This document shows, in pieces, positions 1-8,620 of a stretch of 8,633 bases of DNA (positions within the stretch are counted from its first letter, which is position 1; the number at the start of each line of letters is the position of its first letter). The translations under genes were made by a program, and so were the position numbers. Location of the stretch: assembly GCF_000143415.4 (NCBI RefSeq), contig NW_003314342.1, positions 881,636 to 890,268 on the forward strand, written 5' to 3'. This DNA comes from Selaginella moellendorffii. Its lineage: Eukaryota; Plantae; Lycopodiophyta. The notes beneath the pieces are model-generated. The model saw only the letters and a list, made by a program, of their open reading frames with translations, ran no database searches and was not told the origin of the DNA.

Positions 1-995
1 AAGGGGGGCACACTTTTTCTTCCAGACGGCACGCAACGATCGATCTAACTATCTAAGATATAAATTTAGCTTTTGTTGGGTTGTGTCGCTCCTTGTTTAC
101 GTCCGGTTTGGGTTTAAGTTTAAACTCCATACTATTCTAGTGGGTGGGGTACCCTCCTCCTTACATTATGCCACTAATATGCCAAAATTGTGTTAGACAC
201 CATTTAACACCATTTTGCGTGTAAGTGTTAGATATGGGGCATTGGTGCTCATGGGATTGTATTAGACCCTCGTTTTGTAGTGCAATAGGCTTGGAGTTCA
301 ACTCCAAATTCATGTGCACTACAGGCTTAGACCCAAGCTGGACATAGAACAAAAAGCAACAAATGCCTCAGGTGGTTAACCATGCATTTCAACCATTATC
401 TCTACTATATAGTTGGAAACCCCCATCCCTCCCCAGTTGAGGAACACATGCTTTAGGCTTTCACCCTTAGTACTAGGAGTTATGCGTGAAACTTACTAAA
501 TATGAAATGGCACTAGATCATGAATTAAGGTGCATAAACAATACCATAATACTTTCTATATTCCATAGATATACTTCTTGAGTGGATTTAGACACTTACT
601 ATGAATAGCATATAGTACTAAAATGGAACTAACACATAAAGCATGATAACGAGGGTGTCTAGCGAACAAGGTAAACTATCAAGTAATGATATTAAGGAAC
701 TAAACTCAATATCATGGGGGTTCTCAACACTAGTAAATGCAAAATTATAATTTGTGAGTTTCTCTAACCAAGTTAAATATGTTTGACTAATAGCATTTAG
801 AAATTCTATCTTTATGTTCATTTGGTCAAATGCACACATAATGACCAATTTTTCAACTAGCTTGGGTGGAGATTATAACAATAACAATAAGGGAAATAAC
901 AATACCAACCTTCTACTATTGTGGCAGTAAGGAGAAAGTGTCTATAAAGACTAGCTGATAAGTATCTTTTGATACCCAAAGTCACATTCGCAACA

Positions 996-1010
996 CTCTT
1001 CCCCCCTTGA
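996..1010 (-). other. Polypurine tract, probably of the chromovirus; a 3' LTR would begin at 995 (TGTTG on minus) and run leftwards, far end unresolved
   Basis: Minus strand TCAAGGGGGGAAGAG then TGTTG. Same orientation as pol and ~585 bp downstream of the pol stop once the TRIM is removed. No partner LTR was seen in the window. Confidence 0.65.
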
Positions 1011-1074
1011 AGAAAATTAATGTCCTTATCGATATATATTTGAGTCTAGCAAACTGTTAAGGAAAAAATTCTGA

Positions 1075-1236
1075 TGTAGCACATCTTATCTCTCTCCCAT
1101 TAAGCCAATTGGAAAAGGGGCAATTGCTTGATAAGAGAGCCCTTAGTGGCTATTTTATCCCCAGTTATCCCCCAAGGTTCCAAGGATCCATGGTGACAGT
1201 ATATCCAAATCTCATCCTATGATCACATACGCTACA
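1075..1236 (-). repeat. 3' LTR of the TRIM-like element
   Basis: TGTAGC...GCTACA 6-bp terminal inverted repeat. Aligns ungapped to 2019-2180 with 16 mismatches in 162 bp by hand count (~90% identity). Confidence 0.93.
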
Positions 1237-1251
1237 CTCACCCCCCCTTGA
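1237..1251 (-). other. Polypurine tract of the TRIM-like element
   Basis: Minus strand TCAAGGGGGGGTGAG immediately before the LTR start TGTAGC. Confidence 0.88.
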
Positions 1252-1281
1252 GAGATGTCAATGTCTTCATTGATTATTGAC

Positions 1282-1307
1282 TAACAACCCCTATTAACAA
1301 CCCCTAC
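1282..1307. repeat. 13-bp tandem duplication
   Basis: TAACAACCCCTAT followed by TAACAACCCCTAC. Confidence 0.8.
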
Positions 1308-1349
1308 TGAGTCAAAGGGAACCAACACCTCCATTTCCACACTCAATCT

Positions 1350-1945
1350 ACCAATCCTTCCATTGTGTAGATTAGCTATTCCATGTGAGGCAACTAGTCA
1401 TCCACCCATACCGTAGTTCCACAGTGGATACCTTCGTCCATGGATGCTCCACCAAGAGGAAGGACCAATCCTTCCATTGTGTAGATCAGCTATTCCATGT
1501 GAGGCAACTAGTCATCCACCCATACCGTAGTTCCACGGTGGATACCTTCGTCCATGGATGCTCCACCAAGAGGAAGGACGTACGCATTAATGCCCAATAC
1601 GTACGATTTCAAATTTAGGGGTAGGAATATACCTTGCTCACATGTGAGGCAACTAGTCATCCACCCATACCGTAGTTCCACTGTGTCATCCACCCATACC
1701 GTAGTTCCATGGTGGATACCTTCGTCCATGGATGCTCCACCAAGAGGAAGGACGTATGCATTGATGCCCAATACGTATGATTTCAAATTTAGGGGTAGAA
1801 ATATACCTTGCTCACATGTGAGGCAACTAGTCATCCACTCATACCGTAGTTCCATGGTGGATACCTTCGTCCATGAATGTTCCACCATGCATTGATGCCC
1901 AATACGTATGATTTCAAATTTAGGGGTAGGAATATACCTTGCTCA
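1350..1945. repeat. Modular tandem array inside the TRIM, order A-B-A-B-C-B'-C-B''-C'
   Basis: A = 32 bp (1350-1381, 1464-1495). B = 82 bp (1382-1463, 1496-1577, 1641-1751 with a 29-bp internal duplication, 1815-1887 truncated). C = 63 bp (1578-1640, 1752-1814, 1888-1945 truncated). About 14 bp are deleted at the last B/C junction. Confidence 0.92.
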
Positions 1946-1983
1946 AAGGTATATTATATTTTTTAAGTAGCCACTAATCAATG

Positions 1984-2051
1984 GGAATCGAACCCATGCC
2001 ATTTGCTCTGATACCACATGTAACACACTTTATCTCTCTCCCCTTAAGCCA
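1984..2051 (-). promoter_or_regulatory. Candidate type-2 (tRNA-like) RNA polymerase III internal promoter, A-box plus B-box
   Basis: B-box GGTTCGATTCC at 1994-1984 lies inside a 5-bp stem/7-nt loop ATGGG-TTCGATT-CCCAT. A-box-like TGGCTTAAGGG is at 2051-2041 (TGGCTTAATGG in the sister LTR, 1107-1097). The boxes are 46 nt apart. Motif evidence only. Confidence 0.45.
2005..2016 (-). other. Primer binding site complementary to the 3' end of initiator tRNA-Met
   Basis: Plus strand GCTCTGATACCA = minus TGGTATCAGAGC, the canonical plant tRNA-iMet PBS, 2 nt from the LTR end. Confidence 0.93.
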
Positions 2052-2180
2052 ACTAAAAAATGGGCAATTGCTTAATGAGAGAACCCTTAGTGGCTATTTT
2101 ATCCCCATTTATCCCCTAAGGTTCCAAGGATCCAAGGTGACAGTATATCCAAATCTCATCCGATGATCACATGCGCTACA
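2019..2180 (-). repeat. 5' LTR of the TRIM-like element
   Basis: TGTAAC...GCTACA, a direct repeat of 1075-1236, followed on the minus strand by the PBS. Confidence 0.93.
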
Positions 2181-7956: not shown

Positions 7957-8325
7957 ACGTCCAGCACAAGATTCTCCGCCAGTGACACTAGAGAAGCAGG
8001 AATCTTTACAGGCCTTCCACAAGGATATTTGCGCACTGCTCCAACAAGCGGCTTTGACGCTCAGCCAAAAGCCTCCGGAATCGATGCTTTTGAGTGTGAC
8101 CCTGGGAGAAAGGATGATTGCTCCACAGCAACAGAGAACAGGAGAGTTTGGGGAAAGCTACTGAGAGCTCGACGTCTCAGTGTAAATGCTGTGAAAGTGA
8201 AGGATGGAAACCTAGTCGGGAGCTCAGCTCGCCAGGTGCTGTCACCAGTGCCCGAGACGAAGGAAAGTGGACGTGGAGAAGGTTTTGTTCGGATCCGGGA
8301 TGGAGGAAGCGGCAAAAGGCAAAAG

Positions 8326-8538
8326 ACTGCCAAGCAAATCGAGGAGATTGCGCTGGGATTGGAGGCAAGCAAGGTTCCTTTCCTCTGGGTGATACGATCA
8401 AACTCTGTTCTTGGCATGGACGAGGAGTTCCACAAAGGTTTCGTGAGCAGGACTGGCGGGAGAGGATTGTTTGTGAGCTGGGCGCTGCAGCTAGAGATCT
8501 TGCAGCACGAATCAACCGGGGCTTTTGTCACTCACTGT
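8326..8538 (+). pseudogene. Family-1 UDP-glycosyltransferase (UGT) internal fragment, truncated within the PSPG box
   Basis: TAKQIEEIALGLEASKVPFLWVIRS...RGLFVSWALQLEILQHESTGAFVTHC then S-stop. The PSPG consensus WAPQ..IL.H...G.F.THCGWNS is cut after HC, and the upstream YVSFGS motif is absent. Confidence 0.9.
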
Positions 8539-8620
8539 TCATGAGTTCGAATGTCCGAATGGCCGCCTGGGCCTCACCGGCTCGAGGGTAGGCCGCGACC
8601 ATGGCGTCGTAAGAAGTTAC
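8537..8620 (-). pseudogene. Isolated PPR motif fragment
   Basis: Minus translation VTSYDAMVAAYPRAGEAQAAIRTFELMN fits the PPR consensus V.SWNAMI.AYA..G....A...F..M. It is not in the supplied ORF track. Confidence 0.68.

Follow-up and report, generated by a model that had tools for sequence, protein, structure and literature searches.

TRIMs that carry Pol III boxes are known, with Cassandra and Helenus as the described cases and with lengths of up to 1263 bp (PMC10886601). Cassandra is a TRIM with the primer binding site (PBS) TGGTATCAGAGC, and its LTR contains the type-1 (5S) boxes A and C together with a terminator (PMC7215508). Helenus-1_SMo (TRIMp3; Kojima 2024), which comes from Selaginella moellendorffii, has an LTR of 120 bp and an interior of 85 bp (PMC10886601). 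A relationship between retrotransposon and tRNA sequences has also been described at the level of priming. In Ty1 and Ty3, packaging of the primer and initiation depend on segments downstream of the PBS that are complementary to the T-psi-C and D arms of tRNAiMet (PMC4974528).

The stretch of DNA analysed here (the window, 8,633 nucleotides) contains a TRIM-like LTR element of 1,106 bp on the minus strand (2180..1075), here called the mini-element, in which a look-alike of a tRNA T arm with an exact B-box follows closely on the PBS. A first-pass annotation of the window had proposed that this look-alike is one half of a tRNA-type Pol III promoter that straddles the junction of LTR and PBS, with a priming structure as one of its fallback readings. 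Comparison with other LTR elements makes it likelier that the motif is part of the priming region than part of a Pol III promoter.

The mini-element resembles Cassandra in its PBS and in having promoter boxes like those of small-RNA genes, and it resembles Helenus in its small size, its lack of autonomy, its iMet-type PBS, and its A- and B-box-like motifs of the tRNA type; the 5-bp target site duplication (TSD) of Helenus has a near-identical counterpart (4/5 bases) in the flanks of the mini-element. It differs from Cassandra in lacking 5S similarity, none of which was detected by Rfam at the mini-element. It differs from Helenus in layout: each Helenus LTR holds a whole tRNA-like unit with both boxes, whereas the mini-element has a loose A-box in the LTR and an internal B-box. 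Membership in Helenus was considered and rejected on the basis of this layout and because the published LTR and interior of Helenus-1_SMo are, by eye, unlike those of the mini-element, which belongs to neither Cassandra nor Helenus. In common with tRNA genes and tRNA-derived SINEs, the mini-element has an exact B-box and a loosely A-box-like motif at an allowed distance (46 nt, compared to about 30-60 bp in type-2 units). Unlike them, it lacks a cloverleaf and acceptor pairing and is not called as a tRNA, it contains a run of six T residues between the expected start and the A-box, and it has LTRs, a PBS, and a polypurine tract (PPT) and therefore moves by the LTR route.

With Ty1 and Ty3 the mini-element shares priming by tRNAiMet and the presence, 3' of the PBS, of short stretches of template related to the T-psi-C arm. 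In contrast to those elements, it is non-autonomous and has a plant host, its pairing with the primer is a prediction, and its box is also a self-folding copy of an elongator-type T arm with an exact B-box; no D-arm box was found in it. HIV-1 differs in that its mimic copies the anticodon arm of tRNALys3, with contacts that have been shown experimentally, whereas the mini-element copies a T arm and is known here from sequence alone. The likeness to HIV-1 consists in tRNA mimicry or extra primer contacts beside the PBS, known there from the tRNA-like element (PMC8191761) and from the primer activation signal.

Anatomy of the mini-element and its gypsy host

The features of the mini-element and its surroundings are as follows.

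2019..2180, minus strand: 5' LTR of 162 nt with TG...CA ends, a direct repeat with 1075-1236 at 90% identity
1075..1236, minus strand: 3' LTR of 162 nt, aligned as the direct repeat of 2019-2180
2181-2185 (tcaaa) and 1070-1074 (tcaga): candidate TSDs in the flanks of the mini-element, with 4/5 bases identical
2005..2016, minus strand: PBS for plant tRNAiMet, TGGTATCAGAGC (complement of the tRNA 3' end), with 2 nt (TG) between LTR and PBS
1237..2018, minus strand: internal domain of 782 nt, with tandem 114/174-nt repeats at about 1350-1950
1511-1888, minus strand: sense-strand open reading frame (ORF) in the interior, a Peptidase_S24-like fragment
1237..1249, minus strand: PPT AAGGGGGGGTGAG, abutting the 3' LTR on its upstream side
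981..1008, minus strand: PPT and first 3' LTR bases of the host Ty3/gypsy element, placed by alignment and resembling the PPT and LTR start of the mini-element

The mini-element thus has the features of a TRIM, namely, short TG...CA LTRs that fall in the TRIM range of about 100-250 bp, a tRNAiMet PBS with a PPT, and no gag/pol. The sole match to the PBS in the window is the one at 2016..2005. The match of 4/5 bases between the flanks fits an old insertion, because the two LTRs are 10% diverged. Both LTR copies keep, upstream, a TATA-like GATAAAATAG (identified by eye), so that an ordinary Pol II promoter is available to the mini-element.

In Pfam, the longest sense-strand ORF of the interior gave a match to Peptidase_S24 that passed the curated cut-off (E 2.2e-6), and a domain search of the interior ORFs found no retroelement domains and no gag/pol coding capacity. 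From this match and the threefold coding repeat, the interior looks like a captured and repeated gene fragment. At 782 nt, it is long for a classic TRIM. A word search with the plus-strand ORF found no further copies of this TRIM family, and an exact look-up of the 126-amino-acid ORF returned no record.

The mini-element is inserted in a decayed Ty3/gypsy element that contains RVT_1 and SH3_Tf2-1 (Tf2-1-type integrase SH3) domains and whose 5' end does not lie within the window. The best protein matches to this host element are just 40-55% identical. Given the resemblance of the PPT and LTR start, it is plausible that the family of the host element is the autonomous partner of the mini-element. 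Among five loci of host-element relatives there was a single iMet PBS, which was not accompanied by the box, a number too small to serve as an unbiased control.

The T-arm look-alike and its predicted complementarity to the primer

[quoted passage not shown]

1981..1997, minus strand: T-arm look-alike ATGGG-TTCGATT-CCCAT, with a 5-bp stem and a 7-nt loop, both perfect
1984-1994, minus strand: exact B-box GGTTCGATTCC (B-box pattern GGTTCGANNCC), within the T-arm look-alike
1998..2004, minus strand: spacer AAATGGC, 7 nt from PBS to T-arm look-alike
2041..2051, minus strand: A-box-like motif TGGCTTAAGGG, in the presumed U5 of the 5' LTR
1097..1107, minus strand: A-box-like sister motif TGGCTTAATGG, in the 3' LTR
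2055..2060, minus strand: run of six T (T6), 3 nt upstream of the A-box-like motif of the 5' LTR
1113..1116, minus strand: run of four T (T4) in the 3' LTR, homologous to the position of the T6

These motifs agree with the anatomy given in the first-pass annotation, which had placed a perfect T-arm mimic with its B-box 7 nt past the PBS and had described the B-box as internal. The box lies outside the LTRs, and no other exact B-box is present in the window; when one mismatch is tolerated, the window contains 2 matches, compared to 0.67 expected. The probability that an exact motif with nine specified bases falls within 10 nt of the PBS is about 1e-4. In view of the metagenome scan described below, an exact B-box this near the PBS is not a product of chance, and the motif is real and non-random.

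The surrounding motifs are less distinctive. The A-box-like motif was present 46 nt upstream of the B-box, with its sister copy in the other LTR, as the earlier annotation had reported. TGGCTTAAGGG and TGGCTTAATGG are the sole matches to a loose A-box pattern, for which 1.32 matches are expected per window. Scored against the consensus TRGCNNAGTGG, the motif reaches 8/9 if a D-loop length variant is allowed for; in 5% of control windows of equal size the score was as good, making this a weak match. The T6 (2060..2055) and the T4 (1116..1113) are the sole sense-strand runs of at least four T, which bears out the earlier observation that the interior is free of TTTT and that the first such run lies in the 3' LTR. 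The 782-nt interior shares this property with 2.2% of mononucleotide shuffles, and its effective length is much shorter because it consists of tandem repeats of the captured coding fragment. Two caveats raised in the first-pass annotation thus hold, as the repeats weaken the significance of the missing TTTT and the T6 would be transcribed among the first 16 or so nucleotides from any canonical start.

Neither structure nor similarity searches identified a tRNA at this site. The T-arm hairpin has a predicted stability of about -5.5 kcal/mol (z -0.5) and is no more stable than shuffled sequences. ARAGORN found 0 tRNA genes at the mini-element, and Rfam matched an 18-nt piece to the T-arm part of the tmRNA model only (E 0.0011) and reported no tRNA-like gene. 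A whole tRNA-like gene spanning the junction was therefore rejected as a candidate; ARAGORN and Rfam find none here, and Rfam finds none in the analogous elements.

For plant tRNAiMet, the last 19 nt at the 3' end (AAACCUGGCUCUGAUACCA) are documented as a small RNA (PMC5846777). The 5' 19 nt are likewise documented as a small RNA, and searches for the 5' half of the plant tRNAiMet T arm found nothing beyond these two 19-nt ends. Positions 49-57 of the T arm were derived from stem complementarity together with textbook initiator features. The T-loop of initiator tRNA begins with AUCG (A54, A60). With the loop start taken from this textbook feature, the loop of the mimic, UUCGAU, complements the initiator T-loop AUCGAA (54-59) exactly. 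An alternative pairing aligns UG-GGUU-CGAUUC with tRNAiMet positions 64-52 with m1A58 bulged out; its core is GGUU/CGAUUC, which would pair with positions 52-62 once the methylated A58 is left out.

The predicted duplex between the post-PBS segment and the tRNAiMet T arm has an energy of -13.1 kcal/mol, compared to -8.5 +/- 2.5 kcal/mol for shuffles, 5% of which equaled it (p about 0.05). This duplex would consist of 12 bp with three wobbles and one bulge, or of a loop-loop contact of 6-7 bp. The proposed pairing would be hindered by m1A58 and by the folded T-loop of a real tRNA. Much of this complementarity to the T arm is expected from any elongator-type T arm.

The PBS and B-box layout in other LTR elements

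Metagenome contigs were scanned with a pattern consisting of the iMet PBS, 0-25 nt, and GGTTCGANNCC. The scan identified 46 loci, about 39 of which are LTR elements that fall into about 15 families. Unrelated sequences accounted for about 6 of the 46 (bacterial coding DNA, a bacterial contig, and one true tRNA whose D-arm happens to contain the PBS 12-mer), which is roughly the number expected at random for such a collection. The LTR families contained the end of an LTR (…ACA, …CAA, or similar), the PBS, and then the motif after 0-15 nt. The gap between PBS and motif was 0-4 nt in 10 families, and gaps of 11-14 nt and of 16-25 nt were absent from the LTR elements, a distribution that ties the motif to the PBS. 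The sample was chosen by the B-box pattern, and an enrichment is suggested by the gap distribution and the number of chance matches. Scans of viral contigs covered sequences that contain almost no LTR elements.

Autonomous elements are among the carriers of this layout. Ty1/copia carriers (L004, L013, L030, L034, and L039) contained copia gag/Pol_BBD tens of nucleotides past the PBS, and L029 is a full autonomous Ty3/gypsy element with RNase H and integrase. At 5-10 kb, these autonomous carriers far exceed what Pol III could transcribe, and they contain too many T-runs for it, so that no Pol III explanation is needed for the motif.

The positions left free by the search pattern lean towards complementarity to tRNAiMet. 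The two bases before the GG, which are pyrimidine-purine in 13/16 families, would be able to pair with G64 and U63; at the two free positions of the loop, 9/16 families have TC or TT. T-stem pairing outside the GG/CC was not enriched across families (16/48 pairs, compared to 18 expected); the extra 3/3 stem pairs seen in the mini-element have a chance of 2-5% and are present in 2/17 families. In the LTR ends of the other families, something similar to the A-box-like motif was found only in the L026 and L029 types. A minihelix formed by the PBS with a mimic of the tRNA 3' end was also considered and rejected, being significant in L002 only (z -2.55) with a mean z of 0.01 across 17 families; for the PBS/anti-PBS minihelix of the mini-element, z is 0.04. 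L002 contains a perfect inverted repeat around the loop, and the family F8 has kept the box and a 15-nt spacer despite divergence of its LTRs. Families with gaps of 0-4 nt (L015, L006, L004, and L009) read like the tRNAiMet complement carried on past position 65, except that a T is lacking at position 58, which would result from read-through of the methylated base by reverse transcriptase or from selection for pairing around that base.

The closest analogue of the mini-element is a young TRIM present on ten VFQN01 contigs (L005/L017 and others), with a diverged subfamily on L028; no published description of it was found. The LTR of this TRIM measures about 113 nt and its interior about 355 nt, and its PPT is G-rich. 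Its LTR ends are TGTA(A)GCG...TTACA, followed by 2 nt and the same PBS, and after the PBS come a spacer of 4-8 nt and CA(T/C)GGGTTCGATCCCCA, which in the young TRIM takes the form of GGTC and then ATGGG-TTCGATC-CCCAC. The VFQN01 TRIM thus shares with the mini-element both TRIM architecture and the same module of LTR end, PBS, spacer, and CATGGGTTCGATYCCCA, with 82% identity across the 45-nt junction; beyond this junction, the window showed no similarity to the metagenome loci. It differs from the mini-element in its GC-rich host, in the absence of an A-box-like motif, and in a further T-arm-like box that lies about 125 nt downstream. An alignment of the VFQN01 subfamilies showed that the PBS and a leader of about 110-135 nt are about 95% identical, compared to about 50% for the U5 end of the LTR and the remaining interior. 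The single substitution in the box between the subfamilies changes a T-A stem pair to C·A and breaks a pair of the hairpin; in a model of intermolecular pairing, the same substitution would convert a U·G64 wobble to a C-G pair.

A second type of TRIM (L018/L026), associated with grass-phyllosphere metagenomes, has an LTR of about 84 nt and an interior of about 160 nt. It contains TGGCTAGGTGG exactly 45 nt before the post-PBS B-box and shows acceptor-like pairing around the unit. The Rfam tRNA model scores nothing at this TRIM; by its sequence, the split arrangement appears noticeably more tRNA-like than that of the mini-element. In both the VFQN01 and the grass-associated TRIMs, (A)GGTC, the usual variable loop of a tRNA, precedes the T arm, and the box looks like a sense tRNA 3' half and not like the complement of a primer. 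The orientation and origin of the box may differ between families.

Possible origin and role of the leader box

The T-arm look-alike of the mini-element is tentatively interpreted as part of a tRNA-related leader box that recurs shortly downstream of the tRNAiMet PBS in many LTR retrotransposons, or as a fossil of such a box. This interpretation is the best supported and may well be correct; our confidence in it is limited because the comparison set was selected by the motif, the evidence for conservation comes from an analogous TRIM, and the pairing is a model. In this scheme, Pol II would transcribe the genomic RNA of the mini-element from the LTR in the ordinary way, tRNAiMet would anneal to the 12-nt PBS, and the box would provide a second contact, at the RNA level, with the T arm of the same primer during priming of reverse transcription, in parallel to the bipartite PBS of Ty1 and Ty3. 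The motif itself, its recurrence beside iMet PBSs in autonomous and non-autonomous elements, and the conserved leader of the analogous TRIM are observations, from which we infer the pairing of the box with the primer and any effect that it may have on priming or packaging. If the box is a second primer contact, the bipartite-PBS logic of Ty1 and Ty3 would extend to copia, gypsy, and TRIM elements of plants and algae, and TRIMs without genes of their own, which borrow the machinery of autonomous partners, would have a concrete cis signal for doing so.

The proposal that the motif is half of a split type-2 Pol III promoter is improbable. [quoted passage not shown] The exact B-box, the A-box-like motif carried by both LTRs at a distance of 46 nt, and the interior without TTTT all accord with such a promoter, Cassandra and Helenus provide the precedent of TRIMs with Pol III boxes (PMC10886601), and the grass-associated TRIM combines TGGCTAGGTGG 45 nt before its B-box with acceptor-like pairing. 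Against these points, the A-box-like motif is close to chance level, with 5% of control windows scoring as well, and it is missing from the VFQN01 TRIM, in which the corresponding stretch of the LTR is the least conserved. Pol III transcription starts 10-20 nt upstream of the A-box, which corresponds here to about 2061-2071, and the T6 would lie at about +2 to +16 of any such start. By textbook Pol III rules, a transcript that started after the T6 and stopped at the T4 of the 3' LTR would have essentially no R repeat, and with no terminal repeat the minus-strand transfer would be expected to fail unless Pol III read into the flanking DNA. The proposal is further opposed by the same B-box layout in autonomous elements of 5-10 kb, by the absence of a tRNA-like gene from the ARAGORN and Rfam results at the mini-element and from the Rfam results in its analogues, by the TATA-like GATAAAATAG conserved upstream in the LTR (by eye), and by the origin of the TTTT-free interior as a repeated coding fragment. 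The headline inference of the first-pass annotation therefore found no support, whereas its anatomy is correct and its fallback, a priming structure, agrees with the coupling of the box to the iMet PBS and its presence in autonomous carriers. There is a small chance that some TRIMs do have a tRNA-like unit split by the LTR/PBS junction, with the A-box half in U5 and the variable-loop and T-arm half after the PBS, so that only the 5' end of the integrated element would bear a working type-2 promoter or TFIIIC site. Cassandra and Helenus would then be joined by a third Pol III-linked TRIM design, for which the mini-element is a candidate and the L018/L026 family more convincingly so. [quoted passage not shown]

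A role as a DNA site bound by TFIIIC alone, similar to an ETC, in which the B-box would act in chromatin boundaries or nuclear positioning and shield the element from silencing without Pol III transcription, would account for the recurrence of the sequence GGTTCGANNCC across families in which the hairpin does not recur, as for a DNA-binding site, and for its presence in autonomous and non-autonomous elements alike. It is nonetheless a long shot, as a chromatin element offers no rationale for the tight coupling to the PBS (gap of 0-15 nt) and the free positions favour tRNAiMet complementarity over the general B-box consensus. The box could also be a neutral fossil with no present function, a piece of tRNA sequence that reverse transcription placed beside the PBS, either by reading past m1A58 of the primer or by switching template to a tRNA. 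The families with gaps of 0-4 nt that read as a tRNAiMet complement minus the T at 58 (L015, L006, L004, and L009), the perfect inverted repeat of L002, as expected of snap-back synthesis, and the absence of conserved hairpin pairing across families point in this direction. A neutral fossil of this kind is unlikely, given that the box of the mini-element is a clean elongator-type T arm 7-10 nt from the PBS, that the leader bearing the box is strongly conserved between the diverged VFQN01 subfamilies, and that the F8 family retains its 15-nt spacer and box on diverged LTRs. The perfect 5-bp stem and 7-nt loop raise the alternative of an RNA structural signal that is independent of the primer, either bound by a host factor that recognizes T-loops or active in dimerisation or packaging, with the palindrome UCGA in its loop. 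Retroviral dimerisation and packaging hairpins also sit just 3' of the PBS, and the HIV-1 tRNA-like element adjoins the PBS (PMC8191761). We consider this signal improbable: the hairpin is not above shuffles in stability, its stem is not conserved in other families and is broken by the change between the VFQN01 subfamilies, and a palindrome of 4 nt is weak as a kissing loop. Pure coincidence in this single element would have in its favour that the site was chosen by the first-pass annotation for its perfect look and that its extra 3/3 stem pairs, with a chance of 2-5%, recur in just 2/17 families; it is the least credible explanation, in view of the probability of about 1e-4 for the exact motif within 10 nt of the PBS and the repetition of the layout in about 15 families.

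For the annotation of LTR elements, the practical consequence is that a B-box or T-arm match beside TGGTATCAGAGC does not by itself indicate a Pol III promoter or a tRNA pseudogene.

The mini-element, its Ty3/gypsy host and coding fragments

The decayed Ty3/gypsy element that hosts the insertion and the TRIM-like mini-element have a similar polypurine tract (PPT) and LTR start, as seen when window 981-1050 (-) is compared with 1195-1295 (-). The PPT and LTR start read AAGGGGGGAAGAG and TGTTGCGAATGTGA in the host and AAGGGGGGGTGAG and TGTAGCGTATGTGA in the mini-element, with a core identity of ~77% between the two regions. The family of the decayed host may be the autonomous partner of the mini-element.

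The interior of the mini-element contains an open reading frame, and there is a second coding fragment at the window's right end:

Window 1511-1888, (-), sense strand of the mini-element: 126-aa ORF inside the tandem repeats at 1350-1950
Window 8029-8541, (+): UDP-glycosyltransferase gene fragment (Pfam UDPGT, E 5.6e-5)

The 126-aa ORF matches Pfam Peptidase_S24 above the curated cut-off, with an E value of 2.2e-6. It includes the Ser-protease motif region (GGASMDEG...TTVWVDD) twice, and at least one further copy is found in the repeats downstream. This ORF looks like a host gene fragment that was captured by the retrotransposon and later duplicated. The UDP-glycosyltransferase fragment contains the plant PSPG-type motif and adjoins a low-complexity stretch rich in proline and histidine.

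tRNA-like arrangements beside the PBS in metagenome elements

Metagenome loci with an iMet PBS and a nearby B-box motif included the following elements:

L018, L025, L026, L027, L031, L047: tiny TRIM, contigs from grass phyllosphere and other metagenomes
L002, L023, L030: PBS/T-loop hairpin, autonomous copia
L005, L016, L017, L020, L035, L037, L038, L042, L043, L046; L028: VFQN01 TRIM, VFQN01 contigs

The tiny TRIM (L018/L026 type) has an LTR of ~84 nt and an interior of ~160 nt. It carries TGGCTAGGTGG 45 nt upstream of the B-box, (G)AGGTC ahead of the T arm, and a GGTCGGG/CCCGGCC pairing, and Rfam returned no tRNA match for it. Taken as one unit, the LTR end, the PBS and the sequence that follows it look like a tRNA divided at the anticodon arm, and the 3' half of this unit is similar to the tRNA-like part of Helenus-1_SMo, a published S. 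moellendorffii TRIM.

In the copia loci, a perfect 10-bp hairpin (ATCAGAGCGG / CCGCTCTGGT) is formed by ATCAGAGC, the 8 nt that end the PBS, together with a GG/CC extension of the stem and a T-like loop, TTCGATC. This hairpin is an acceptor/T-arm minihelix look-alike, and it would have to open before the primer binds.

Repeated units in the VFQN01 TRIM and L008

Members of the VFQN01 TRIM family are 97-100% identical, a young family whose copies are located at the ends of contigs from a eukaryotic host with a high GC content (60-65%). The leader includes two repeats of 38 nt, and ~125 nt past the PBS there is another T-arm-like box, TGTTCGAT(T)CCTGGCTGG. At another locus, L008, positions 100-330 hold three tandem copies of a ~65-nt unit in which the PBS is combined with an LTR end that contains an inverted repeat (ACCAAAACC...GGTTTTGGT); only the final copy is followed by the B-box. 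Rfam gave this region a weak match to the plant miRNA precursor MIR9486 (E 0.026).
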